A stretch of 64,000 bases of DNA from Thecamonas trahens ATCC 50062 (lineage: Eukaryota; Protista; Apusomonadida), in contig NW_013657617.1 of the NCBI RefSeq assembly GCF_000142905.1, forward strand, positions 47,567 through 111,566, given 5' to 3'. Shown in pieces: positions 1 through 38,940 of the stretch. Every line of letters begins with the position of its first letter. The first letter of the stretch is position 1. Below the pieces are notes generated by a model that saw only the letters and a program-made list of their open reading frames with translations, searched no databases and was not told where the DNA came from. A program made the translations under genes and the position numbers.

Positions 1-687
1 TTCCTCTGGTGCGCCGACTCGATTAACGAGCGGCCCGACGAGTACTGGCGCATGGTCATGGACATTGCCCGCTCGTTCACCATTTCGCGCATCAAGCGCT
101 GCGGCCAGATCATGGGCCGCTCCGAGGGTGACGACCAGCCGGCCTCGCAGATCTTCTACCCGGCCATGCAGGCTGCCGACATCTTCTTCCTCGGCGCCGA
201 CATTTGCCAGCTCGGCATGGACCAGCGCAAGGTCAACATGCTCGCCATCGACTACGCCAACAAGATCGGCGTCCCGCCGCCGGTCGTCGTCTCGCACCAC
301 ATGATCATGGGCCTCACCGGCGAGAAGATGTCCAAGTCGGACCCCAACTCGGCTATCTTCATGGAGGACGACACCGCCGCTATCCGCAAGAAGATCAAGG
401 CTGCCTTTTGCGAGATCGGCAACATCGAGAAGAACCCCGTTCTCGAGTACTGCAAGTACATCATCTACCCCGCCGGCGTGGTCCTCACCATCGATGGCGA
501 GGAGTTTGCCACCTACGACGCCGTCGAGGCCGCCTTTCTCGACGGCTCGCTCCACCCGGGCGCTCTCAAGCCCGCTGTCGCCGACGCCATCGACAGCCTT
601 GTCGAGCCCGTCCGCCAGCACTTCCGCAAGGATCCGGTCGCCCGCGAGCTCCTCAAGAAGGTTCAGTCGTTCAAGGTGACCAAGTAA
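1..687 (+). CDS. YARS: Tyrosyl-tRNA synthetase, cytosolic (archaeal/eukaryotic type), 5'-truncated by the window edge
   Basis: Frame is open from base 1 (FLWCADSINERPDEYWRMVMDIA). Contains QIFYPAMQAADIFFL, QLGMDQRKVNMLA and the class I KMSKS motif (KMSKSDPNSAIFMED). Stop TAA at 685-687. Confidence 0.93.
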   Translation, partial: FLWCADSINERPDEYWRMVMDIARSFTISRIKRCGQIMGRSEGDDQPASQIFYPAMQAADIFFLGADICQLGMDQRKVNMLAIDYANKIGVPPPVVVSHHMIMGLTGEKMSKSDPNSAIFMEDDTAAIRKKIKAAFCEIGNIEKNPVLEYCKYIIYPAGVVLTIDGEEFATYDAVEAAFLDGSLHPGALKPAVADAIDSLVEPVRQHFRKDPVARELLKKVQSFKVTK

Positions 688-904
688 GGCCCTCCGCCCT
701 CTGTGAGCCTCCAGTAAACTTGCCTGTCCCAGCCGCTTGTCCCCACACCGCTAGTCCCCTACAGCATGGGAAATTCCCTGCCGCAACCTCTGCTGACCTG
801 TCAGGGGCCACGTGCCGTGCAGGACGCTGATCTCGACCGACCTATCACGGGCGGCGCTCCGACTCCCCGGAGTCGTCGCTGACAACGTCAAGTTCATCGT
901 GTTC

Positions 905-1055
905 TTGGGGTATCGGTCCGGACACGGTCTGAAGACGGTCCTCAAGGAGCGGTCCGGGAACGCCCCAATGGCTTTTGTACGGTCTCAGGAACGGTCTGGG
1001 TACAGTCTCAATAACGATCTGGGTACGTTCTCGGAGCGGTCTCGGAGGTCCTGCA
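905..1055. repeat. Degenerate ~11-12 bp periodic array of CGGTC-like motifs
   Basis: CGGTC or one-mismatch variants start at 914, 925, 936, 950, 980, 992, 1003, 1015, 1026 and 1037. Confidence 0.55.
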
Positions 1056-1289
1056 GTGGTGCTAGGGCGTCGCTGTGGGGGAGATACACCGTACAGGCCA
1101 ACAAAGTGGTGAAAATCGAGTATTACGGGGCCATGCGGCACTGTTCCACGGTCATACCACGGCGCACCAAGCGATGGCAATCAGCACAGCTTACCATCGG
1201 GATCGTAAAGGAAGAACTCGATCTGCGCACAGTCCAAGCCGTGGTTGGACATCGACGTCAGACACGGTGACATCGTGCGTTGATGTCGC

Positions 1290-1460
1290 AAATGCTAAAA
1301 ACTGTCAAATATTACCCCCAAACGAGCAAAATTATTCATTTTACATAATTCATGTCAGATATACACTTTAATATTGCAATTATGGTTTCTATTGCATATT
1401 TGTATGTATGCATATTTATATAAATATATAAATATATAATTTGGATTAAGACGTAAAGTC
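1290..1460. other. AT-rich island with (TATATAAA)n-like tract
   Basis: Strongly AT-rich stretch including atatttatataaatatataaatatataattt, in an otherwise very GC-rich window. It lies between the convergent TyrRS and permease genes. Confidence 0.8.
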
Positions 1461-1769
1461 GATGCCTGGGGGAAAATGCATCATTGTGTGACTTGTCCAC
1501 ACAATGCCCACATCTTATGCATGTCAGTGCTACCCATGCGCGTGTGGTAGCCTTTGTGGGCCCGTCTTTGGAATGCTTGTTGTAGCCACTCCTCATACAC
1601 CAAGTCTGGTCTCAATGTGCTGCGTACTGCGTGCTCCAGATGCCGAAAACCCGGTTTAATGGTGACCATTTGTCGCGCGGAGCCGACGCCGCACAACACC
1701 CAAGCTCTCGCGAGCCCCTCGGTGGTGGACACCACTACATCACATCTTGACACGGGTAGTTTATGGCGA

Positions 1770-2852
1770 TCAGGCCTCGTTGATCGACGGAGCAGCTTTG
1801 ACACTCTCCCCAGGCGGTATCACGGCCGAGAGAAGCGGCGGCGACTCCTTGGCCCTAGCGGCTGCGCGCTGTTTGAGCAGATGCCCGCCGTAAATGTAAA
1901 GGGCGATGCCCGGAACAGTCATGGCACAGGCGACAGCCTTTTGCCATGGAAAGCTCTCGTGGAAGAGCTTGACGACAAGGATGACGACGATCATGCGGCG
2001 GGCGACGTCTGCGACGGCGGCGAAGAGGGCGGACGACTTGGAGATGACGGCAAACTTGAAGAACATGCCAGTCTGCTTGGTGAGGGCGACGGCAACCATG
2101 CAGAGGATGATATACAAGTGACGGTTATCCTTGTGGCTGGCATCCGTCCACACGGCGCTGTACTCGGTCCACTCGCGCGAGATGAGCCAGCAGACGATGA
2201 TGACCAGCCACGCCGAGATGCCGTTGAAGAAGGCAGCCTCAGCGACGGTCCGCATCGACGTCGACTTCTTAACGTCCTTGAGCAGAAACGAGGCAAGCAC
2301 GGCCTGCGAAGCGTTGGAAAACGCAGATATAATGGCGAAGATAAAGCCGAAGAGGTGCTTCGAGCTCGTTATGCCATTGGACTCCTTGTGGTCCGACTTG
2401 TGCGAAGCAAGAACGGCTGTCGACGTAAGAAGCAGCACAACCGACGCCGCATGGTACCGCGTTAGCTCTTTTTTGAGGAAGATTCGCGACTCAACGACGT
2501 TGAACACAATGTTCGTCGACTTGAGCAGCATGTAAGTCGAGCCGGGCAGCCAGTTGATGGCAAAGGCGAGCGTAATCATGTGGACCGAGTCGAGGACGCC
2601 CATGGCGCAGAGCTTGGCCGTCAGCTTGAGCGTTAGCGGGACCCGTCCATCATCGACCTCGTGCGTCAGCTTGTGCCCGAGAATGACTCCGAGATGGACC
2701 GGCCAGCCCGAGGTCATCAGCACCGCCGTCAGCCACGGGAAGACGTAGCCCCAGTGGTCAAGCAGCTTGGTCACCGTTGGCGGTGTCGCATACATGGCGA
2801 TGAAGCACATCGTGAGCACCACAATCACGGCCTTGCCACCATCCGAGCCCAT
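1770..2852 (-). CDS. Purine permease (PUP/PUNUT)-like DMT-superfamily transporter
   Basis: About 10 hydrophobic segments. FPWLTAVLMTSGWPV, WLPGSTYMLLKSTNIVFNV and FHESFPWQKAVACAMTVPGIALYIYG resemble plant PUP motifs. Start placed at MGSDGG; the ORF extension upstream is low-complexity flank. Confidence 0.75.
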   Translation of the reverse strand: MGSDGGKAVIVVLTMCFIAMYATPPTVTKLLDHWGYVFPWLTAVLMTSGWPVHLGVILGHKLTHEVDDGRVPLTLKLTAKLCAMGVLDSVHMITLAFAINWLPGSTYMLLKSTNIVFNVVESRIFLKKELTRYHAASVVLLLTSTAVLASHKSDHKESNGITSSKHLFGFIFAIISAFSNASQAVLASFLLKDVKKSTSMRTVAEAAFFNGISAWLVIIVCWLISREWTEYSAVWTDASHKDNRHLYIILCMVAVALTKQTGMFFKFAVISKSSALFAAVADVARRMIVVILVVKLFHESFPWQKAVACAMTVPGIALYIYGGHLLKQRAAARAKESPPLLSAVIPPGESVKAAPSINEA

Positions 2853-28042: not shown

Positions 28043-28683
28043 TGTGAGGGGAATAATCGATGGTCATTGATGGTTGTTGTTGGGCTGTGAGGGGAATAAT
28101 CGATGGTCATTGATGGTTGTTGGTGGGCTGTGAGGGGAATAATCGATGGTCATTGATGGTTGTTGGTGGGCTGTGAGGGGAATAATCGATGGTCATTGAT
28201 GGTTGTTGGTGGGCTGTGAGGGGAATAATCGATGGTCATTGATGGTTGTTGTTGGGCTGTGAGGGGAATAATCGATGGTCATTGATGGTTGTTGGTGGGC
28301 TGTGAGGGGAATAATCGATGGTCATTGATGGTTGTTGGTGGGCTGTGAGGGGAATAATCGATGGTCATTGATGGTTGTTGGTGGGCTGTGAGGGGAATAA
28401 TCGATGGTCATTGATGGTTGTTGGTGGGCTGTGAGGGGAATAATCGATGGTCATTGATGGTTGTTGGTGGGCTGTGAGGGGAATAATCGATGGTCATTGA
28501 TGGTTGTTGGTGGGCTGTGAGGGGAATAATCGATGGTCATTGATGGTTGTTGGTGGGCTGTGAGGGGAATAATCGATGGTCATTGATGGTTGTTGGTGGG
28601 CTGTGAGGGGAATAATCGATGGTCATTGATGGTTGTTGGTGGGCTGTGAGGGGAATAATCGATGGTCATTGATGGTTGTTGTT
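28043..28683. repeat. Minisatellite, 43-bp unit TGTGAGGGGAATAATCGATGGTCATTGATGGTTGTTGGTGGGC, ~15 copies
   Basis: Unit starts at 28043 and recurs every 43 bp to 28645. Copies are near-perfect, with occasional gttgttgtt variants. No spacers. Confidence 0.97.
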
Positions 28684-28785
28684 AGTCCCCCTCCCCCCCC
28701 CCATGTGCGACCCCTTCCCCCTCCTTCCCTCCCTCCCTCCACCCCCCTCCCCCTCCCCACCACCACTCCTCCCCACCTCCCCACC

Positions 28786-29035
28786 ATGCGCAAGTGCTCG
28801 ATATGCGGGCGTGACCAGGACTCCTCGGCCTTCTCCAAGTCGCAGTGGAAGAAGGGCACAGCAGCAAAGTGCCGGACGTGCGTGGCCTCTCCCCCGCCTG
28901 CCTCCCTCCCAGCTGCCGACCACGAGCCCGTGCCTCCCGCTGCTGCTCCTGCTCCTGCTCCCGCTGCTCCTGCTCCTGCTCCTGCTCCCGCTGCTCCTGC
29001 TCCTGCTCCTGCTCCCGCTTCCGCCACTGCTCCCG

Positions 29036-29066
<31 letters not shown>

Positions 29067-31080
29067 CGCTGCTCCCGCTGCTCCCGCTGCTACTCCGATG
29101 TCCAGTGCCGGTGAGGACCGAGCTGACGATGGTGCTGATGATGCTGATGCCAAGCCTGCTGAGCCCGAGGTCGAGACTGAGGACGGAGCTGATACCGATG
29201 ATGACGGAGCTGATGATAGTGCTGATGACGGTGCTGATAATGCTGATGCTGAGCCTGCTGAGCCCGAGGCCCAGTCTGACGTCGATGCTGATGCTGATGC
29301 TGAGCCTGCTGAGCCTGCTGAGCATGCTGAGCCCGAGGCCCAGTCTGACGCCGATATTGGTGCTGAGCCTGTTTCCGAGCCCGAGTCCAAGGTTGATACT
29401 TATGCTGATGACAGCACTAGTGCCGAGCCTGAGCCCGAGGCGGATACTGGCCTCGCCAAGCCTAACCAGACGGTCGTGTCGTCCACCGCCGACTCCACTC
29501 CTGTTGTCTCCACCTCGGGCTCTGCCGAACCCGAGGCTGAGCCCGAGTCGACCGAGTCGGCTGAGAACTCTTCTACTGGCGACGATGCCGCTGGCGTCGC
29601 CCCGCACCCTCGCCGCCGCAAGCGCCACGTCCGTGTCCGCAAGAAGCGCAAGGCTAAGGGCAAGTCCGCTGCTGCTCCTGCATCCGAACTCGAGCCCACT
29701 CCCACCCCCAAGACCAAGAGCAAGAGCAAGACCAAGGTCAGGGCCAAGGGCAAGGTCAAGGCCAAGACCAAGAGCAAGACCAAGGTGAAAACCAAGACCA
29801 AGACCAAGACCAAGACCAAGACCAAGACCAAGAGCCGCCCGCCTGCGCCCGCATCCGCGCCCAACAAAGGCAAGGACGAGGACTCGCAGAGCTCTGCCGA
29901 TGAGGTCGTCGCTGCACCGCCGCCGCCGCCGCGCTCGGTCTCGGCCGCTGCGCAGTCGCCAGACGGCGACAGCGTGCCTGTTGTTCCGGGCGTCGCGCCC
30001 GAGCTGGTGCTCAAGTACATGCAGACGCCGCTGGATCTCACCCGCGAGGAGCACGTGGCCACATTCCCGCAGTCGTGGGCCGCTGCTGCATCGGCTGTCG
30101 GTGGTGGCAAGCTCCCGCGCTATGCACTCCTCCCACACACGTATACCTCGTTCTGGCGGCCGGCGCCGCCGGCGCCGCCGACGGCTACAGCGCAGGAAAA
30201 GGCGCGCGTCTTTGCGCTGCGTCCGACCAAGGGCGCAGCCACCCCGAAGGCGGCCAACACTCTCCGCCTCGCCACCTACAACGTGCTTGCGTCCGACTAC
30301 GGTGGCGCCGTCCGCGTCGGTGCCGTTTGTGACGTCCTCTGTGACATGGTCGACGCCACCGACGTCGTTGCCCTCCAGGGCGTGACCAAGGCCATGCTCG
30401 CCGGCCTCCTCGCCCGCCCACGGCTGCAGGACGCGTACTTTGTGTCGGACATCGACGGCTCGACCGTCGTCGGTACGCCCGGCGGCGGACTTGTTCTCTT
30501 CTCCAAGTACCCGCTGCAGAAGATGGTCCTCCACACTCTGCCCGCCAACGGCCGCCTCCTCCTCGCCACGCTTGTCCTCAACTCGCGCAAGTTTGCCGTC
30601 GCCAACCTCCATCTCCCGTCGTCTGTCGCCGCCGAAGTCGATGCTGGCCTCTACGCCGCCTTTACCAAGCTCATCCCCTTCCACGACGCCCTCGTTGCCG
30701 CAGCCTTTTCCCCCGCCGCCGACCCGGCCGCCCTTCCGTTCACCTACGGTGACGTGTGGAAGCTGCTGGCAACCGACGACCCGGGCTTCACCTACAACCC
30801 GGCGTCCAACGCCATGGCCGCCCATCTTGCTTCCGAGGACGCATCGTCACCACCGCCCGCTTCCCGTCCAGACAGGCTGCTCTTCCGCTCCGCTGGCGGC
30901 CTGTGGACGCCGGTCGCCGGAGGCCTCGTCGGCACCGTCCCCGTCCCCGAGTACGCCCATCTCCTGCCCTCGACCCACTACGCGCTCCACGCCACTTTTG
31001 CCACCACCGACCCGGCCGTCGACGACCTCGTCGCCAAGGCCCGCAAAAAGGCCAACGCCGGCGGATGCTCGGTGATGTGA
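28786..31080 (+). CDS. Stc1-like Zn finger + low-complexity linker + degenerate EEP (TDP2-like endonuclease/exonuclease/phosphatase) domain + C-terminal CaaX
   Basis: KCSICGRDQDSSAFSKSQWKKGTAAKCRTC; LRLATYNVL, DVVALQGV, ANLHL, PGFTYNP..N, RPDRLLF, PSTHY; ends in CSVM. ATG in ccaccATG context. Confidence 0.8.
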
Positions 31081-31109: not shown

Positions 31110-33848
31110 TTACCGAAAGTCGGCGTCGTCGGCGTTGCGGGCGACGATGGCCGCGGGCGGCGGAGGCGGGAGCGGCGGCGGAGCGAGCTCGGGCTCGGCC
31201 ACCACCGTCCACTCGGGCCGGACGTGCGAGGCGGCGCCCCAAAGGTAGAGGCACTGCGGGAGGCCGCGCTTACTCGGCTCGCGCGCGTCCGGCAGTAGCG
31301 TCGTTATCATCTCCTGCAGATCCGTCGGCCGATCGGCCTTGCCGGCAAAGTCAAAGATGACGTCGCACGACCGCTGGTGCCGGAGGTTGAGCTTCTCCTG
31401 CGGCGCGCGACGAAAGACGAGGCACGTGTCGTGCGCCGCCCGCAAAAGGCCACTGCTGCTGCCGGTGATGCGGTGGCCCCGGTCGGAGAGGACCACGGCC
31501 ACGTTCTCCACGTACTTGGCCGCCCACTGCGTCTCCACAAGAAAGAGGACTTGAGGGAGCAGCGCCTTGGGCACCCACACGCAGAGCATGCCCTTGGGAA
31601 AGAGCTTGGCCGTCAGGCCGAGCCGCTCCACCACCCGCCGTGGCGTCAGCCCATCGCGGCCCCACGGCGGATCCATGATCACCGCCGAGTAGCTCGCGCC
31701 GTCGGCTTCGAGCGCCGCGAGCGTTCGCGCGCCAAAGTACAGCGGCGCGCCGACGGCGCCGCCTGGCGCCACCATCGGCCGCACCTGCCGCGCAAACTTG
31801 GCCACCACGCGCTCGACCTTGACATCGCCCGCCCGCCCGCGCGAGCTCGAGCTAGCGCTCGACCGCGACTTGCTCCTGTTGCTCTTCTTCCATCCGCCGA
31901 CCTGCGATCGCAGCTGCTCGCGCCGCCGCCCGCCGCTGCTTCCGGTGCCCCACCTCGCACCGCCTTTCTCGCTCGCCGCCAGCGCCTCCCACAGGCTCCG
32001 CCGGAACTCGAGCGAGTCGGCGACAGCTTGGACTGGATCGCGGTTCCGACGCTGGACCATGGTCCGCTGAACCGCGGCCTCAGCTTCGGCTGCTACCTCG
32101 GCCGCCGTCATCGTCGCCGGAATGAGCGCGCCCACCAAGCCAAAGTTGCGGACGCCGGTCGCTCCGCCCTCGAGCTTCCTCGCCCGCTTGGCCGGTCGCG
32201 CTGCGGTCTCGGTTCCGTCCTCGCCGTCCTCGTCGGGCACGTAGTACGTCACAAGGTCCTCTAACGTCCGCTTGAGCGTCGCGCCGTGCTTGCGAAGCGA
32301 GGGCAGCGAGGTCGACGCCGCGGCTATTGCTGCCGCCGCTCCCATCGCGCCCTTGCGCGAGCTCGACCCGCTGCTCCGCTGCTTGGTCGCCTGGCCAAAG
32401 GTGCTCGAGAGCTGGCAGAGCTCAGTGATGAAGCCGTCGACCTTGGCCTCGAGCGCCAGGCCCTCGGGCGTGTTCCACACCGGCGCGAGCTCGAACCAGT
32501 CCGGCTCGGCCTGCTGCGCACAAAACGCAGAGCTGGTGGCAATCTCGCGCGAGAGGTGAACCAGCTTGCCGTCGTCGGTCATCACGTACTCGTCAGTCTT
32601 GATCTTGCCGGCCTTGACCAGCCGCCGGTAGTGGTTGGCGCACTGGTAGCCAACTCGCCGCGGCAGGACTTTGGAGAAGATGCCCCACAGCGAGCCGATG
32701 CGCAAGCCGCGCTCCTTAAACTCGGCCATCCGTGCAGCAAACGCAGCCTCCTCGGCCGTGCTCCACTTGCCGTTCACCTGCGTCTCGTCGATGTCCGTCA
32801 GCCGGTAGTAGAACGCGTCCGGGCACTCGCGCCGTCGCCGCCATGCCCGCACCCGTGCCACGCTCCACTTGGCCACGTTAGTCTTCTGATACACCGCCCC
32901 GAGCCCAACCACGTCGTTCTTGCTCCCGTCGGCCACCTCCATCGTCACTCGCGTCGACTCTGCCACCACCCGGGACTTTGACTTGCCCTTGCCCTTGCCG
33001 TTGACCTTCTTGCTCGTGCCCTTGCCCTTGCCGTTGACCTTCTTGCTCGTGACCTTGCTCTTGCCGTTGACCTTGTTACCCGTGTCATTGCCCTTGCCCT
33101 TGGGCGAGCCAGCCCGACCCAGCTCGGGCGTTGCCGCCGCTGCCGCCGCATCCCGCACCGCCGTCCAGCTCTTCTCCTCATCCCGGCTCTTCTCAGCCTT
33201 TTCCTCCTCTGCATCAAGCATATCCCATGCCGAGTTGTCTACCTGGAGCGCTGCTGTCGTTGCAGAGGCGTTGGTGGTCACCGACGCCTTGGCCGATGCT
33301 CGCGACTTGGCCGATCTCCGAGACTTGCTCGACGTGCTCGACATGCTCGACGTGCTCGACGTGCTTGACGTGCTCGACGTGGTCGACGCGCCCAACTTGC
33401 TCGACGCGCCCGCCGACCTTTCGGCCGCAGCCAGCCACCCGGTGATGGTGCCAGAGCCGGCCGAGGCCGATCGAGTCGCTGCGGCCCGTGTCGATGCCGG
33501 GCGCTGGCGAGCGGTAGATTCCACGACCTTTTTCGCCTCTGGCCCGAGCCGGGGCGTCTCCGGCTCTGCGGCCCAGAGGGCGACTGCGGGCGGTGCTGCC
33601 GAGCCCATGCGCGTCGGAGACGTTTCACCATAGCCTCCGTCCCCATGCGTGCTTGCCCGGTGCTGCGGTGTGACATGCGTCCGTACCGCCGTCTCGGACG
33701 CTCCCACTCCGCCGTCGCCTAGGCTCCGGCCGGCCAACCAACTGCGACCTTTTGCTCCGCTCCCGCCACTGCTCGCCACCTGCCCAACCTCTCCCACGCT
33801 CCCTGCGAGCGTCCGCCGCAGGTTGCGTGACGCCAACCGCAGTCGCAT
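31110..33848 (-). CDS. Myb/HTH (p1/AMTP1-like) + MT-A70 family N6-adenine methyltransferase (MTA9/AMT6-7-like) fusion
   Basis: AFYYRL..Q.NGKWSTAEEAAF...WGIFSKVLPRRVGYQCANHYRRLV at ~32555-32880. SAVIMDPPW (DPPW at 31662-31673), GMLCVWV, KYVENV, LRHQRSCDVIFD, MITTLLP and LYLWG at ~31200-31740. Single open frame. Start uncertain (33848 or further upstream, up to 34088). Confidence 0.8.
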   Translation of the reverse strand: MRLRLASRNLRRTLAGSVGEVGQVASSGGSGAKGRSWLAGRSLGDGGVGASETAVRTHVTPQHRASTHGDGGYGETSPTRMGSAAPPAVALWAAEPETPRLGPEAKKVVESTARQRPASTRAAATRSASAGSGTITGWLAAAERSAGASSKLGASTTSSTSSTSSTSSMSSTSSKSRRSAKSRASAKASVTTNASATTAALQVDNSAWDMLDAEEEKAEKSRDEEKSWTAVRDAAAAAATPELGRAGSPKGKGNDTGNKVNGKSKVTSKKVNGKGKGTSKKVNGKGKGKSKSRVVAESTRVTMEVADGSKNDVVGLGAVYQKTNVAKWSVARVRAWRRRRECPDAFYYRLTDIDETQVNGKWSTAEEAAFAARMAEFKERGLRIGSLWGIFSKVLPRRVGYQCANHYRRLVKAGKIKTDEYVMTDDGKLVHLSREIATSSAFCAQQAEPDWFELAPVWNTPEGLALEAKVDGFITELCQLSSTFGQATKQRSSGSSSRKGAMGAAAAIAAASTSLPSLRKHGATLKRTLEDLVTYYVPDEDGEDGTETAARPAKRARKLEGGATGVRNFGLVGALIPATMTAAEVAAEAEAAVQRTMVQRRNRDPVQAVADSLEFRRSLWEALAASEKGGARWGTGSSGGRRREQLRSQVGGWKKSNRSKSRSSASSSSRGRAGDVKVERVVAKFARQVRPMVAPGGAVGAPLYFGARTLAALEADGASYSAVIMDPPWGRDGLTPRRVVERLGLTAKLFPKGMLCVWVPKALLPQVLFLVETQWAAKYVENVAVVLSDRGHRITGSSSGLLRAAHDTCLVFRRAPQEKLNLRHQRSCDVIFDFAGKADRPTDLQEMITTLLPDAREPSKRGLPQCLYLWGAASHVRPEWTVVAEPELAPPPLPPPPPAAIVARNADDADFR

Positions 33849-34084
33849 CGCTCTCACGGCTCTTGTCGTCGAGTGTGCTCGTCTGCTGCCGAGACGGGGC
33901 CTCACCTGGCCGCTGTTCCTCACCGCCTCGCCTGTGATCGTGGCCATGATCGTCAACGTGATCGCGATTGCGATCGCGATCATGATCACCTTCGCCTTCT
34001 CCTCGTCGCCCTGGCCAGCGCCATGCGTCGGCTGCTGCGGCACGATGGATGCGACACCAACGGCGTTATGCCCTGTATTATGAG

Positions 34085-34716
34085 TCACATCATGGTATCA
34101 GCCTCACCCATCTTCTGCTCGACGTCCATGTCGTCGTCCATGTTGTCGCCTACTCGGCTGATGATGCCCCTCGAGAGACTCGACGCGGTGCGCCGGTGCG
34201 TCGTTGCCAATGCAATCAAGCACATCTTCAGCGGCGGCCCTCTCGGGGCGAGGCAGTGCTGCCGAACCGAATTTCCCCACTCGGCGCCTTCCACAATCAT
34301 CGCTCGCACCATCTCGGCAGACTTCTCCTGTTCTGTTGCCGTCCCATCGACGTACGCCGTCCACAATCATCGCTCGCACCATCTCGGCAGACTTCTCCTG
34401 TTCTGTTGCCGTCCCATCGACGTACGCCGCGATCAGGACGGAAGAGTGTGATCTTCTTCATCCCCGTCTCCGTTCGCTTTACGCTCAACCGGTGTGAGCG
34501 GTAGCAGGACGGAAGAGTGTGATCTTCTTCATCCCCGTCTCCGTTCGCTTTACGCTCAACCGGTGTGCTTACGCAGACCGAGTCTGAAGCAGACCACCAG
34601 ACCATGGCGCATGATCCTCCAGCGCGACTTGCTCTTATCAGAGTGGCGTTCAATCGAGCTACCCATGCAGGACCGTGACTCCGACCGTGCAGAGCGCAGA
34701 CGATCGAGGTTCTCAC
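34085..34716 (-). pseudogene. Degraded inverted fragment resembling the C-terminal domain of the adjacent Cys-rich membrane protein
   Basis: AYVDGTATEQEKSAEMVRAMIVEGAE aligns with AFVDGSVTDQAHSPQMVRAMMVNGAE (~38675-38750). Frameshifts and internal tandem duplications are present. Confidence 0.7.
34290..34567. repeat. Two adjacent tandem duplications (70 bp x2 at 34290-34429; 63 bp x2 at 34434-34496 and 34505-34567)
   Basis: Exact duplicated text with periods of 70 and 71 bp. Confidence 0.93.
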
Positions 34717-35067
34717 GACAAACTTGGAGCTGGTTTCGTCGAACGCGCCTTTGGCCAGGACCTCCCCCCTCTCCTCCCCTCCCGACTACACACATCTGGC
34801 CTGTATGCATATTTTCGCCCACCCCACTCGTAGTAAATAATACCACAACGTTCAGCCAAGCACGTGACCCCCTTTCTGTCTCCACCACCACGGCACTTCG
34901 TCAGCACGCGTTCGCCACACGCTACAGAGCACACGTTTGTATTCCTCTCTCTCCCTCTCTCTCTCTCTCTCCCCCCCCCCCCCCATACCCCCTCCCTCGC
35001 ACCACATAGCATATTGCACAGCTGTACACACCATCTTCTTTCCTTTATCTCTCTCGCCAGAGTAGGC

Positions 35068-38000
35068 ATGGTCGCGACCCGAGACGGCGGCAGGTCAGCT
35101 CGGCTGGCTGGTGGCCTTTTCGCCGCACTGGTTGTCGCTGCGGTGCTTTTTCCGTCATTGGCCTTTGGCAGATGCTGGAGCTCGCCGTACATTTCCGATT
35201 TGGCCCAGGATGAGAGCGAGTCATCGCAGACTACGATCAAGGTCACATGGGAGCCAACGACGAAAGGTGGCGCATGTGGTGCACGGACGGCTGTTAAGCA
35301 CTGGCGCATTATGCCTGACGCCAGTTGGGAGACTCTCTCCAACGACAACGGTCTCTCGTCAGCTCTGGACGAGTATTCAAAGTCCTCGCTCCTGCCGGGA
35401 ACAGAGTACAAAGTTCGTGTGAGGGCGTACCAGTTTCTTTTCATTCATGACAAGTACATCGACACTCGGACGGCGTGCCCGCTTGGCACAGCGTGGAACA
35501 ATCCCTTATGTACACTCTGTCAGGTCGGCTACTACCGTGACGATCCCACCTTTGGAGCGGCGTGCACCCAGTGCCCGCTTGCTGTCTCAGGCGTGACGAC
35601 TGTAGATGCGGGTTCCACAAGTGTCACCGAGTGTGTTTGCCCACCGGGCAAGGGGCGGAGTAGCCCTAACGATGATTGCGTGCCGTGCGGCGTGGGCAAG
35701 TTCAAGAGCGGGTACGGCAACTCCGAGTGTATTGGGTGCTCTGTGCCGTTCACCACGACAGTCGGTGGGGCCGACACTGAGGATGACTGTGTGTGCGACG
35801 CCGGGCACTACCGCGACGGAGCTGGGCAGTGCCCGGCGTGTCCACTTGGCACGTATAAGCCAACTGCAGCCAATGCAATCGCATGCAACTCGTGCAAGTC
35901 GACCGAGACCACGGCGGCCATGGGTGCGCTTACCGAGTCCGAGTGTGTGTGTAGGCCCGGGTTTGAGCGTGTTGCTGGTGTGTGCGAGCCGTGTGGCAAG
36001 GGTACGTACAAGGACACTGCCGGCGACGGAGCGTGCTCGCTCTGTCCGGGCGGCACGTCCTCGAACACCGTCGGCGGTGCAGACGTGGCATCATGCGACA
36101 CGTGTAAGCCTGGCTTCTTTGGCGACGACTGCAGCGGCGTCTGCTCCTGCTCGGTCGATCAGGTGTGCCTAGATGGGCGGTTTGGGTCTGGTAACTGCAC
36201 TTGCTTTGTTGGCTCGGGGCTGTCAGGCGCTGGATGCGATCAATGCGAGGCTCCGCAGTACTTTGGACGGCCTTGGTGCAACTCCACGGTCGAGTGCGTC
36301 AACGGCGTGCCCGACTATGGATTTGACGGCAGTGGCAAGTGCCGCTCGTGCCAACTTGCAGCGTACGACTTTGCCGCCGACCCGACGTGCGCCACGTGCG
36401 CGGCGCTCAACTTTGGCGTCAGCTGTTTGCAGTGTCCCATTGGGCACCACGGCTCTGGTGACAACACCGATGGCCCTTGCGAGCTGTGCAGTGCAGGCAC
36501 GTTCAAGGATGTCACAACAGCCCTGCAGCGATGCAAGCCGTGCGACGCGGGAACGGTGTCACCGAGCCCAGGCGCGGCATCCTGCCAGCGGTGCGAGCTG
36601 TCGACTTACCAAAGCGATCCAGGCGCGGTAAGCTGTCTGCCATGTGGCCGCGGACGAGTGACCGCAAGCGATGGGGCGACGACGGTTGCGGCATGCACCC
36701 CGTGCCCTCCAAACTCGTACAAGGTAGAGGAAGGGTTTGGCACGTGCGTGGCGTGTCCGGGCAACCAGACGACCAACGGGGAGGTGGGCACGATCGAGGT
36801 CGAGGGCTGCGGGTGCGAGCCCGGCTTTGGACTGGTGGGTGATGTGTGTGTGGCTTGCGAGCCCGGCGATGTGGCGCTGTCGTTTGATCGGGAGGCATGC
36901 ACGCCGTGCCCAGTGGGAACGACATGGGCGTCTGCGGCTGGCGGGTGCGTGTCATGTCCGTTTGGCGGATATTGCGCGGGGCAGACGGCCAAGCCGATCC
37001 CCAACTCGGGCTTCTACCCGCTGCCTGGCCAGGGCGTGACGTCGGGACTGTACGAGCCGTGCACCCCGGCGGGCGTCTGCCTTCGTGGCGGAGTCTGTCG
37101 GTTCGGTCACATTGGCGAGCGGTGCTCGCAGTGCATCAAAGGATGGGCCAAGAACCCTAGCTCGGGCCTGTGCGAAAAGTGCCCGTCGTCGATCCCGTTC
37201 ATCTTTATGGGCCTCGCGGTTCTCGGCATCATCCTCTGTATCCTGCTCATCAAGCTCGCACGCAAGAATACGGCGTTCTTCACGGCCGCTTCGGTCGGGT
37301 TCAACTTTCTGCAGCTCATTGCGGTCCTCGCCTCGTTCCAGATCAAGTGGCCGGGGTGGACACAGCGGTTCTTTGAGATCCTGTCTGCGGCCAACATCGA
37401 CCTGCAGCTGTTCAAGCCCGAGTGTCTTGTTTCGAGCTCGTCGGACGCGTACTTTACGATCTGGGCCACCAAGCTTGCAGCCCCTTGGGCGCTGCTCGTG
37501 ATGTTTGCGGTCGGCTTCAGCATTTTCCGGCTCTACGCCGCTGCGCGCAAGTGGACGGCACCGGCCAAGGCGTCGATGAAGTATGCGTTCACCAACGCAT
37601 CGGTCATGGCCATGTTTGTCATGTACCTGCTAGTGACCAACACGGCGCTGGAAATCTACCCGTGCACCAAGCAGGCCGACGGCAAGTACACGATGAACCG
37701 CGAGCCGTCGATCCGGTGCTACCAGGGCAAGTGGTTCGAGCTTCTGGTGGGCTCGATTTGTGCCATGATCATGTTTTCGCTCCTCATGCCGCTCGGCGTA
37801 CTCAAGGTGCTCCACAAGCGGCGGTTCAACCTGTGGAAGCGGAAGAACCTTGCGCGATACGGCCTGCTGTACCTGCGATACCGGCCCAAGTACTACTTTT
37901 TCGAGATCCTCGTCCTTGTCCGCAAGTTTGGCGTGGTGTTTGGCAAGGTGGCGTCGTCTGCGAGCGTGGTGGGCCAGGTGCTCACAGCGCTGGCAGTGGT

Positions 38001-38940
38001 GTGCCTCTCGCTCGGACTGCAGCTCAAGACGCATCCGTTTGCAACGATGCGGATCAACCGGCTGGAGACGCTCATGCTCTCGTGCGCAGGCTTTGTGCTC
38101 GCGCTGGCGTTTGTGTACGCGGCCGCTGACGGCGGGCTCAATGCGTCGTTTGCCAACACGCTCGGAGTGGTGCTTGTGGGCGTGGTGTGCGTGGCGATTG
38201 TGATTCTTCTGGTGGCGATTGTTCTGGAAATCACGAAAATCCACCGAATGCTGCGGCGGGGGCTTGTGGGCAAGTATGTGGTGGACCGGCTCGATGTGTG
38301 GCGCCCGTTCTACACGAGCGGCATGTTCCTGTTGGAGCACACCCAGACGACGGTGGGCGAGGCGGCGGCAAACATTGTGATGACGTTCTCGACGACCGAG
38401 CCTGTCGAGCTGGTGGCGGAGATGTTCCTGGAAACAGTCATCACGCACCGGAGCGAGAAGCGGACGACGGACGATGTGGTGCTCCACGGCTGCCTTCAGC
38501 CGTCGGACCAGGCTGTCGAGTCACGGAGCGACTTTCTGCAGCACACCGTCACCATGCACGCGCCGGCGCCCGGTCACTACGTGGCGACGATCGCGGTGAT
38601 GGCGGCCGGCAGGACGGCGACCACGCCGCGCGAGCCAGCAACGGGGATGCGCGGGTGGCTGGAGAAGCTCGCGGCCTTTGTCGACGGCTCGGTGACCGAC
38701 CAGGCGCACTCGCCCCAGATGGTCCGCGCCATGATGGTCAACGGAGCCGAGCGGGCCATCCGATTCCGCGTCACAGCCTCGCCCGAGTGGGCTGCTGAGG
38801 ACGCCATGGCTGGCACTGCCGCCGCGGCCTCGGAGTTTGCAACCGATGTCGACGAGGATGCGCTCCTCTCGCGGCCGTGGAGCATGTCGCCCGAGGAAAT
38901 GGACGCTCTGGACGAGGAACACGAGCTTCAGGCACTGTAA
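35068..38940 (+). CDS. Cell-surface protein: signal peptide, FN3-like domain, GCC2/GCC3 (ephrin-receptor-like)/EGF Cys-rich repeats, ~8-9 TM region, cytosolic tail
   Basis: Hydrophobic leader GGLFAALVVAAVLFPSLAFG; TTIKVTWEP..LLPGTEYKVRVRA; many CxxCxxGxYK repeats; NFLQLIAVL..IKWP, YGLLYLRYRPKYYFFEILVLVRKF and HPFATMRINRLE in the TM region. Confidence 0.85.
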   Translation: MVATRDGGRSARLAGGLFAALVVAAVLFPSLAFGRCWSSPYISDLAQDESESSQTTIKVTWEPTTKGGACGARTAVKHWRIMPDASWETLSNDNGLSSALDEYSKSSLLPGTEYKVRVRAYQFLFIHDKYIDTRTACPLGTAWNNPLCTLCQVGYYRDDPTFGAACTQCPLAVSGVTTVDAGSTSVTECVCPPGKGRSSPNDDCVPCGVGKFKSGYGNSECIGCSVPFTTTVGGADTEDDCVCDAGHYRDGAGQCPACPLGTYKPTAANAIACNSCKSTETTAAMGALTESECVCRPGFERVAGVCEPCGKGTYKDTAGDGACSLCPGGTSSNTVGGADVASCDTCKPGFFGDDCSGVCSCSVDQVCLDGRFGSGNCTCFVGSGLSGAGCDQCEAPQYFGRPWCNSTVECVNGVPDYGFDGSGKCRSCQLAAYDFAADPTCATCAALNFGVSCLQCPIGHHGSGDNTDGPCELCSAGTFKDVTTALQRCKPCDAGTVSPSPGAASCQRCELSTYQSDPGAVSCLPCGRGRVTASDGATTVAACTPCPPNSYKVEEGFGTCVACPGNQTTNGEVGTIEVEGCGCEPGFGLVGDVCVACEPGDVALSFDREACTPCPVGTTWASAAGGCVSCPFGGYCAGQTAKPIPNSGFYPLPGQGVTSGLYEPCTPAGVCLRGGVCRFGHIGERCSQCIKGWAKNPSSGLCEKCPSSIPFIFMGLAVLGIILCILLIKLARKNTAFFTAASVGFNFLQLIAVLASFQIKWPGWTQRFFEILSAANIDLQLFKPECLVSSSSDAYFTIWATKLAAPWALLVMFAVGFSIFRLYAAARKWTAPAKASMKYAFTNASVMAMFVMYLLVTNTALEIYPCTKQADGKYTMNREPSIRCYQGKWFELLVGSICAMIMFSLLMPLGVLKVLHKRRFNLWKRKNLARYGLLYLRYRPKYYFFEILVLVRKFGVVFGKVASSASVVGQVLTALAVVCLSLGLQLKTHPFATMRINRLETLMLSCAGFVLALAFVYAAADGGLNASFANTLGVVLVGVVCVAIVILLVAIVLEITKIHRMLRRGLVGKYVVDRLDVWRPFYTSGMFLLEHTQTTVGEAAANIVMTFSTTEPVELVAEMFLETVITHRSEKRTTDDVVLHGCLQPSDQAVESRSDFLQHTVTMHAPAPGHYVATIAVMAAGRTATTPREPATGMRGWLEKLAAFVDGSVTDQAHSPQMVRAMMVNGAERAIRFRVTASPEWAAEDAMAGTAAAASEFATDVDEDALLSRPWSMSPEEMDALDEEHELQAL

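Follow-up and report, generated by a model that had tools for sequence, protein, structure and literature searches.

A Myb-bearing AMT6/7 (MTA9)-type protein encoded in the genome of Thecamonas trahens

A 64,000-nucleotide stretch of the Thecamonas trahens ATCC 50062 genome (contig NW_013657617.1, positions 47,567 to 111,566; hereafter the window) carries on its minus strand an open reading frame (ORF) that joins a Myb-like domain to an MT-A70-fold domain, and this raises the question of what such a protein contributes to the writing of N6-methyladenine (6mA) in DNA. In the current picture, the eukaryotic 6mA writer consists of AMT1, AMT6 or AMT7, p1 and p2, with DNA binding attributed mainly to p1 and with AMT6/7 subunits devoid of the catalytic DPPW motif. 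A reading made from the letters of the DNA alone (the sequence-only reading) had proposed that the protein is a single-chain fusion of p1 and MTA9 in which DPPW is retained. The present analysis confirmed that both domains lie in one uninterrupted frame (31110-34088), in which all the motifs quoted by that reading, including DPPW, YVEN, ITTLLP and LYLW, were found; the distance between the domains, which had been put at ca. 270 residues, measured ca. 310 residues from the end of Myb helix 3 to DPPW. The results point, with a probability of ca. 60%, to a second AMT6/7 (MTA9) protein, one that bears a Myb module for DNA targeting and serves as an alternative non-catalytic partner of AMT1.

Family of the MT-A70 domain and the other 6mA-complex genes

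When the target protein was searched with phmmer against all chains of the PDB, the best matches were Tetrahymena MTA9/AMT7 (9u92_B, 7yi8_A and 9o6k_A; expectation value (E) ca. 3e-5), MTA1 ranked after these (E 3.5e-4 or weaker), and no METTL3, METTL14 or METTL4 chain appeared at E<=1. A Pfam scan of the protein did not recognise the MT-A70 domain. An exhaustive phmmer search of 1.84 billion cluster representatives returned 258 relatives of this domain, the best of which was 40% identical over a full-length match, while P0002 was 52% identical over a shorter stretch; the target protein itself was absent from this library, in which no match exceeded 52% identity. YVEN was present in most of the best 150 of the 258 relatives in a pattern search, and RHQR was common to the aligned subset of relatives (alignment A3), where the YVEN and RHQR columns were invariant or nearly so. 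In the PDB phmmer alignment, the target retained the Arg and His equivalent to R378 and H379 of MTA9. Trees with AMT1 and AMT2/5 of this genome as the outgroup placed the target inside the AMT6/7 family (Shimodaira-Hasegawa-like approximate likelihood ratio test (SH-aLRT), 99), and MT-A70 trees clustered it with the environmental sequences P0002 and P0001 (support 98). On sequence grounds, the MT-A70 domain belongs to the MTA9/AMT6-7 family, and its earlier placement in this clade rather than with METTL3, METTL14 or METTL4 was supported by the PDB matches and by the trees, which covered AMT6/7, AMT1 and AMT2/5 sequences. The nearest relative of the domain, P0002, is a predicted protein without a Myb domain, and a 131-residue gene fragment lies just upstream of it on its contig.

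The last 253 residues were modelled with AlphaFold2 (AF2) at a predicted local distance difference test score (pLDDT) of 81.5, and the model showed the MT-A70 (beta-class, permuted) fold (Foldseek E 6e-12). In VIA comparisons, the model matched MTA1 with Z 18.0 (root-mean-square deviation (rmsd) 3.6 over 172 residues) and METTL3 with Z 17.6. At the level of the fold, MTA9 and the catalytic subunits cannot be told apart; it is sequence and trees that carry the AMT6/7 assignment.

The target resembles Tetrahymena AMT7/MTA9 and AMT6/MTA9-B (7yi8, 9u92, 9o6k and 9vu6), its best PDB sequence matches, in the MT-A70 fold, in the YVEN and ELRHQR-type motifs including the p1-contacting Arg-His, in the loss of cofactor-pocket residues, in the co-occurrence of AMT1, p1 and p2 in the genome, and in the presence of two AMT6/7 paralogues with differing N-terminal regions in one genome. 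Unlike the target, ciliate AMT6/7 proteins have no DPPW, and their N-termini are disordered tails (with a PIP box in AMT6 and IBD2 binding in AMT7) instead of a folded Myb domain; besides, their large insertion region is missing in the target.

A six-frame PF05063 search of the 28.7-Mb genome detected three MT-A70 loci besides the target, and METTL3, METTL14 and METTL4 were not found in it. The three loci are an AMT1 orthologue (L001), a protein with zinc-finger repeats, read from its translation, whose architecture marks it as AMT2/5 type rather than AMT1 (L002), and a canonical AMT6/7 in which SPTL replaces DPPW (L003). This inventory of one AMT1, one AMT6/7 plus the target, and one AMT2/5 matches the Thecamonas trahens row in the supplementary table of PMC12695648. 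The open frame of L001 covers the MT-A70 domain only (189 residues from ATG, 214 residues open), and its N-terminal helix region, which binds p1/p2 in ciliates, would have to be encoded by an upstream exon if it is present at all.

Separate genes were also found for the DNA-binding subunits. A p2-like protein (L039) matched p2/AMTP2 chains at 1e-4 and p1 at 1e-3, while its PHD finger matched that of ING5 at 7e-12. A genome search with the N-terminal part of L039 located a p1/AMTP1 orthologue (L043), whose match to Tetrahymena p1 (E 3e-33) spans residues 10-176, its N-terminal DNA-binding region with the conserved PGW linker; this conservation is very strong for a ciliate compared with this protist. 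The PHD finger of L039 might connect the 6mA complex to H3K4me3, and a PHD on p1 has been reported in ichthyosporeans (PMC12695648). AMT1, canonical AMT6/7, p1 and p2-like proteins, four in all, therefore each have a gene of their own, to which the target adds a further family member.

The Myb module and its distribution

The N-terminal module was modelled (AF2, pLDDT 86.9) as a three-helix Myb core preceded by two extra helices and followed by a C-terminal beta-hairpin, with a 5-residue insertion ahead of helix 2. It is strongly basic, with an isoelectric point (pI) of 10.5 (9.0-10.6 in the other Myb-AMT6/7 proteins), and DNA binding by the module would fit this basic character. The Pfam Myb/SANT family PF00249 remained below threshold on the target alone (E 0.17; 12.5 bits vs. 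a cut-off of 24.4), the paralogous modules of this genome passed it, and the target module by itself matched c-Myb repeats weakly in a PDB search. The proteins matched by a profile of seven module sequences (A1; the target and six genome copies) included c-Myb (1e-17), B-Myb, SNAPC4, WER and Reb1. The best Foldseek match of the module model was T. vaginalis Myb3 (E 0.017), and VIA matches comprised a SNAPC4 Myb repeat (Z 6.4, rmsd 1.5), RAD, Reb1, CoREST SANT and c-Myb R2.

The proposal of a p1 (AMTP1)-MTA9 single-chain fusion, which would act as a pre-assembled scaffold for AMT1, draws on the presence of a Myb-like and an MTA9-type domain in one frame and on the description of p1 as Myb-like or homeobox-like in the literature. 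However, neither the target module nor profile A1 matched any p1 or p2 chain in the PDB at E<=10, while these chains were found readily by their real relatives (E 1e-3 to 1e-33 with L039 and L043), and hhalign of the p2-like domain of L039 against A1 gave a probability of 40%, that is, generic similarity only. Fold searches with the module turned up small DNA-binding domains of helical build, among which Myb and SANT domains were the best VIA matches, and no p1/p2 chain. The target has no counterpart of the p1 signature region, the conserved residues that surround the PGW linker and helix 3, and p1 was matched by no region of the target in PDB phmmer, with no search aimed at the middle helix-turn-helix of p1 that binds the AMT1 N-terminal helix. 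Moreover, the genome has separate p1 and p2-like genes, and the p1-docking residues of MTA9 recur in the target. The fusion is thus scarcely credible. Basic and enlarged by extra elements, the N-terminal module is a Myb domain of the c-Myb R2 kind; it is unrelated to the p1/p2 homeobox-like domain, contrary to the p1-type assignment made in the sequence-only reading, which had itself named a Myb domain without a match to p1 as a ground for refutation. The target shares with p1/AMTP1 and p2/AMTP2 a three-helix (Myb or homeobox-like) DNA-binding module that is associated, presumably also in its own case, with the AMT1 complex, whereas p1 has an N-tail, the PGW linker and alpha5/6 where the target has N-terminal helices and a beta-hairpin, and no sequence relationship between them was detectable.

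Six further clear copies of the extended module occur elsewhere in the genome (Table 1), with the consensus WS..AR..A..PN.YYYR..PGE..G.W..EE..F...WG.F..PGRVGYQC across the genome copies. The copy in the CAF-1 large-subunit homologue (L005) has the 5-residue insertion and the post-Myb motif of the target, yet it is acidic (pI 5.6). A homologue search limited to the Myb module returned only CUE-Myb-U-box proteins (P0159-P0162), whose modules were 41-47% identical to that of the target. Proteins of this kind from Balamuthia, Polychytrium, Rhizoclosmatium and Dispira, as well as L006 and L008, have the same extended module including WS...PN.YYYR (45-47% identity); unlike the target, they have no MT-A70 domain, no 5-residue insertion and no post-Myb motif. 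The CUE-like-Myb-U-box architecture of L006 and L008 recurs in Balamuthia mandrillaris as well as in fungi (chytrids and kickxellomycetes), all as 'hypothetical' proteins.

A scan of the best 150 of the 258 relatives of the MT-A70 domain with profile A1 showed that at least nine cluster representatives have this module at their N-terminus (E<1e-16), besides N-terminally truncated ones. Such Myb-AMT6/7 proteins were found in Kickxellomycotina (hypothetical proteins of Dimargaris xerosporica and Dispira parvispora), Mortierellomycotina (Podila epigama), Entomophthoromycotina (Entomophthora muscae) and green (trebouxiophyte) algae (Myrmecia bisecta and Nannochloris); a further member, P0001, is encoded by an intronless gene on a Tara Oceans marine metagenome contig. 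In the full-length alignment A2, the module, the post-Myb motif (W.TPE....E..VD.W) and the AMT6/7 domain were colinear among the members, and the Podila, Entomophthora, Dimargaris and Dispira proteins share all three with the target, including DPPW in the last. The 5-residue insertion before helix 2 marks the Myb-AMT6/7 modules, and the U-box-type copies are without it. Two mutually exclusive N-terminal types were recognised in the family: one with YVGYAED / LF.RTS (45 representatives and L003) and the Myb type (ca. 14).

In the tree of the MT-A70 domain only, the Myb type fell into three supported groups (fungal, algal and that of the target), and its label required two changes on the tree compared with a shuffled mean of 12.7. 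Constraining all Myb-type rows to one clade gave a slightly better likelihood (+0.8) and a P value of 0.51 in the approximately unbiased test (p-AU). Because of these values, a single ancient origin of the Myb type is compatible with the data, though not proven. Duplication of Mta9 has been reported in Mortierellomycotina, Entomophthoromycotina and Mucoromycotina (PMC12019607), and a Nature Genetics survey (PMC12695648) lists two AMT6/7 proteins each for Mortierella and Umbelopsis in a supplementary table. The published duplication covers two of the three subphyla with Myb-type members, Kickxellomycotina being unnamed there (PMC12019607). The duplication (Mta9_A/Mta9_B, Rhizopus microsporus) is treated there as an event within fungi. 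A Myb domain on Mta9 is mentioned neither in the available text of PMC12019607 nor in the text of PMC12695648, and full-text literature searches found no description of the Myb-AMT6/7 architecture. A more far-reaching idea is that Myb-AMT6/7 proteins represent an ancient second AMT6/7 lineage that predates the split between fungi (with their relatives) and green algae and defines a DNA-sequence-directed AMT1 complex, which would for example seed ApT 6mA at particular motifs, with the DPPW-keeping protomers of this protist and early fungi engaging the flipped adenine or even transferring methyl; this we regard as distinctly unlikely.

Active-site residues and the proposed role

The MT-A70 domain of the target was aligned with AMT1 and AMT2/5 of the same genome, with residues as named in bioRxiv 10.1101/2025.07.08.663716, where D79, P80, P81, Y97, S202 and K204 of AMT1 form an aperture between adenine and S-adenosylmethionine (SAM) and are conserved in METTL3. 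Of these pocket residues, the target retained only D-P-P(-W), so that the claim of an intact DPPW held in both the sequence and the alignment. The loop that follows DPPW falls 10-20 residues short of its length in AMT1 and AMT2/5 and has no tyrosine, and the Ser..Lys pair of the AMT1 regulation loop is replaced by Ala/Asp..Arg. The C-terminal E..R.NN and GN residues, kept in AMT1 and AMT2/5 of this genome, are substituted in the target. These C-terminal residues correspond to SAM contacts in METTL3 structures.

Many non-ciliate AMT6/7 proteins keep signature forms of the motif (DPPW, DPPF or NPPW), and [DNSH]PP[YFW] was kept in 18 of the 56 AMT6/7 representatives (6/14 Myb-type and 12/42 canonical). 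DPPW is perfect in the target, in P0002 and in all fungal Myb-type members, while P0001, the nearest full-length relative, has NLDW at motif IV and algal Myb-type members have NAPL or NPPV. Since such forms occur, motif IV appears to be free of catalytic constraint across the subfamily. Judging from these sequences, DPPW retention is common outside ciliates and uncoupled from an intact pocket.

These observations bear on whether the target could be an active, self-targeting adenine methyltransferase, either alone or as the second active site of a dimer. The perfect DPPW shared with P0002 and the fungal members, the adjoining DNA-binding module, and a fold at least as near to MTA1 and METTL3 as to any pseudo-enzyme chain speak for activity. 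In contrast, the loop after DPPW is short and without tyrosine, the Ser/Lys, E..R.NN and GN residues are replaced, the NLDW and NAPL members show that the motif is dispensable, and in the Tetrahymena complex SAM and S-adenosylhomocysteine (SAH) are bound by MTA1 only (PMC12485025). The self-targeting methylase envisaged in the sequence-only reading is therefore very improbable, given the degenerate state of the remaining cofactor and adenine pocket, and a pseudo-enzyme appears to be the likelier reading. In this respect the target is comparable to METTL14, the partner of METTL3, a degenerate MT-A70 protomer that supports its catalytic partner and contributes to nucleic-acid binding; METTL14, however, belongs to a different clade, acts on RNA, has EPPL in place of DPPW and RGG repeats in place of the Myb domain, and is not found in this genome.

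Based on these results, the role of the Myb-bearing AMT6/7 protein may be described as follows. By analogy with ciliates, the target would pair with AMT1 in place of the canonical AMT6/7, because AMT6 and AMT7 form alternative AMT1 complexes that differ in their N-termini. The divergent N-termini are held to direct these two complexes in Tetrahymena through the PIP box of AMT6 and through IBD2 with H2A.Z/H3K4me3 in the case of AMT7 (bioRxiv 10.1101/2025.07.08.663716; PMC12485025). In the target, the Myb module would act as an extra, possibly sequence-specific, DNA or chromatin tether that directs the AMT1 complex to particular DNA. Catalysis would be left to AMT1, and DPPW may be kept for structure or DNA contact and not for methyl transfer. 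The N-terminal region of p1 contacts E376, R378 and H379 of MTA9 in the DNA-bound Tetrahymena complex (PMC12485025); since MTA9-type p1-docking residues are kept, the target would still need p1 in trans, and both p1 and p2 would be used by its complex.

Several observations weigh against this proposal. The similarity of the target to MTA9 is weak (E 3e-5, compared with 3e-17 for L003), and the trees are quick searches run without METTL3, METTL14 and METTL4, with poorly resolved backbones. In each MTA1c entry, the best structural chain was the catalytic MTA1 and not MTA9. One residue of the p1-contact triad, MTA9 E376, is Asn in the target, which has N-L-R-H where the family has E-L-R-H. The only public contigs (three small low-depth sets from one sample) cover 32593-34359, short of the MT-A70 half. 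Furthermore, the full preservation of DPPW in the target and the fungal members is unexplained if the motif has no function.

A further question is whether the target acts without AMT1, either as a partner of the ZZ-finger AMT2/5 or as a Myb-type chromatin or DNA-binding factor with a dead MT-A70 domain. The genome has an AMT2/5 gene (L002), AMT2/5 proteins are reported to be de novo 6mA enzymes in Tetrahymena (PMC12077518), and the same Myb module sits here on other chromatin proteins (CAF1A, RBBP5-like WD40 and U-box ligases). Against this, the p1-docking residues are conserved, and Mortierella verticillata is listed with two AMT6/7 proteins and no AMT2/5 (table of PMC12695648), so that AMT1 would be the only available catalytic partner there; the Myb type occurs in the related Podila epigama. 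We thus consider action without AMT1 unlikely.

Gene limits, surrounding DNA and implications

The frame comprises 992 codons counted from GTG in the ORF listing, and position 33848, given as the start in the sequence-only reading, is an ATG at codon 81. The fraction of G and C at third codon positions (GC3) was 0.84-0.92 from ca. codon 300 to the end (0.78-0.92 counting every block from codon 301), 0.68 at codons 251-300 and 0.86 at codons 201-250. Over codons 1-200 it was only 0.68-0.78 with high GC at second positions (GC2), and the coding-type GC3 signal was lost upstream of ca. codon 200. Relatives with short N-termini (metagenomic P0001 and algal P0075) begin 7-25 residues ahead of the conserved WS of the module, and fungal Myb-AMT6/7 members have N-terminal extensions of roughly 40-215 residues before it. 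Given the weak GC3 over codons 1-200 and the short N-termini of P0001 and P0075, the true start is more likely at 33344, 33221 or 32942 than at 33848 or the GTG, and the 5' limit is uncertain.

The same figures bear on the suspicion that the gene model is an artefact, namely a long ORF that is open by chance because the DNA is GC-rich, or else a pseudogene, or a read-through of two neighbouring genes. Such an artefact would agree with the many long spurious ORFs in this GC-rich DNA, the non-coding appearance of the first ca. 200 codons, the failure of the public contigs to reach the 3' half, and the absence of the protein from the protein libraries searched. However, both domains and the post-Myb and linker motifs are colinear with full-length proteins of other organisms, GC3 is 0.78-0.92 in every block from codon 301 to the end, which spans both domains and the linker, and both domains fold confidently in the models. 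An artefact is thus highly improbable.

Contigs of the three public sets, which may be RNA or DNA, matched the locus at 99-100% identity. They leave the assembly at 34359, and one rejoins it at 34505, having 80 different letters where the assembly has 145. This break lies in the spacer upstream of the target and may reflect a difference between alleles or in the assembly.

The spacer, 775 bases between the target ORF and the divergent neighbour (34864-38940, plus strand), has a lower GC content (ca. 0.59). The product of this neighbour (1358 residues) contains ephrin-receptor-like cysteine-rich repeats, six in number, together with a multi-pass membrane region of TRP-like type. On the other side, a convergent plus-strand gene (28633-31080; 815 residues) ends 30 bases from the stop codon of the target, and its product ends in an endonuclease/exonuclease/phosphatase domain, is of low complexity over long stretches and gives a weak match to an Stc1-like zinc finger.

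Table 1. Features of the target gene within the window, and related loci elsewhere in the genome with their own contig positions.
Feature	Position	Strand	Basis or remark
Maximal stop-free frame	31110..34088	-	stop codon 31110-31112; ORF listing
Stretch with the three most plausible start ATGs (33344, 33221, 32942)	32942..33346	-	GC1/2/3 profile, methionine positions, N-termini of relatives
Extended Myb module, aa 395-512	32553..32906	-	profile matches, alignment, AF2 model, structure comparison
Post-Myb motif W.TPE....E..VD.	32430..32477	-	alignment A2
Linker motif ..VQRRNR.P	32034..32060	-	common to target and closest relative P0001; similar motif in P0002
MT-A70-fold domain, MTA9/AMT6-7 type, aa 777-966	31191..31760	-	sequence searches, alignment, model
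DPPW (motif IV), intact, aa 806-809	31662..31673	-	followed by a short loop without the tyrosine-bearing insertion loop of AMT1/METTL3
YVEN, aa 859-862, AMT6/7 family signature	31503..31514	-	Y, E and N invariant, V nearly so in alignment A3
LRHQR..DVIFDF, aa 902-914	31347..31385	-	R-H align with MTA9 R378/H379, contacts of the p1 N-terminal region
L001, AMT1 orthologue	G000:C27:38623-42126, ORF 1495-2064	-	E 4e-71 to MTA1 vs. 2e-38 to METTL3
L002, MT-A70 with DPPW and intact pocket	G000:C31:271074-274607, ORF 37-2817	+	followed by Cys/His-rich ZZ-type finger repeats
L043, p1/AMTP1 orthologue	G000:C20:454830-458006, ORF 1435-2106	+	223 aa
L039, p2-like	G000:C65:151444-154575, ORF 1486-2466	-	326 aa, homeobox-like domain and ING-type PHD finger
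L005, Myb module copy	G000:C14:511910-515191, module C14:513410-513691		CAF-1 large-subunit homologue (CAF1A domain)
L006, Myb module copy	G000:C17:460647-463964		(CUE)-Myb-U-box protein
L008, Myb module copy	G000:C16:461485-464790		(CUE)-Myb-U-box protein
L009, Myb module copy	G000:C55:87914-91189		RBBP5-like WD40 protein
L007, Myb module copy	C22:189673-192951		no other recognised domain
L010, Myb module copy	C19:360537-363827		no other recognised domain

Because the AMT1 kit is complete, 6mA at ApT in this genome would be a fair prediction, by the correlation given in PMC12695648; a literature search found no paper joining Thecamonas with 6mA and AMT1. In the literature examined, it is stated neither that many non-ciliate AMT6/7 proteins keep DPPW nor that a conserved AMT6/7 subfamily with its own basic Myb module exists in early fungi, green algae and this protist. 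The Myb-bearing AMT6/7 lineage is thus genuine, and as a form of a known subunit it has apparently not been described. For this locus, the annotation should be corrected from a p1-MTA9 fusion to an extra AMT6/7-type subunit that is probably without enzymatic activity. The relevance of the finding is moderate and concerns specialists in eukaryotic 6mA. Myb-AMT6/7 proteins may explain the fungal 'Mta9 duplication', and if the Myb module does direct AMT1 to specific DNA, it would offer a testable route to the placement of 6mA domains outside ciliates.

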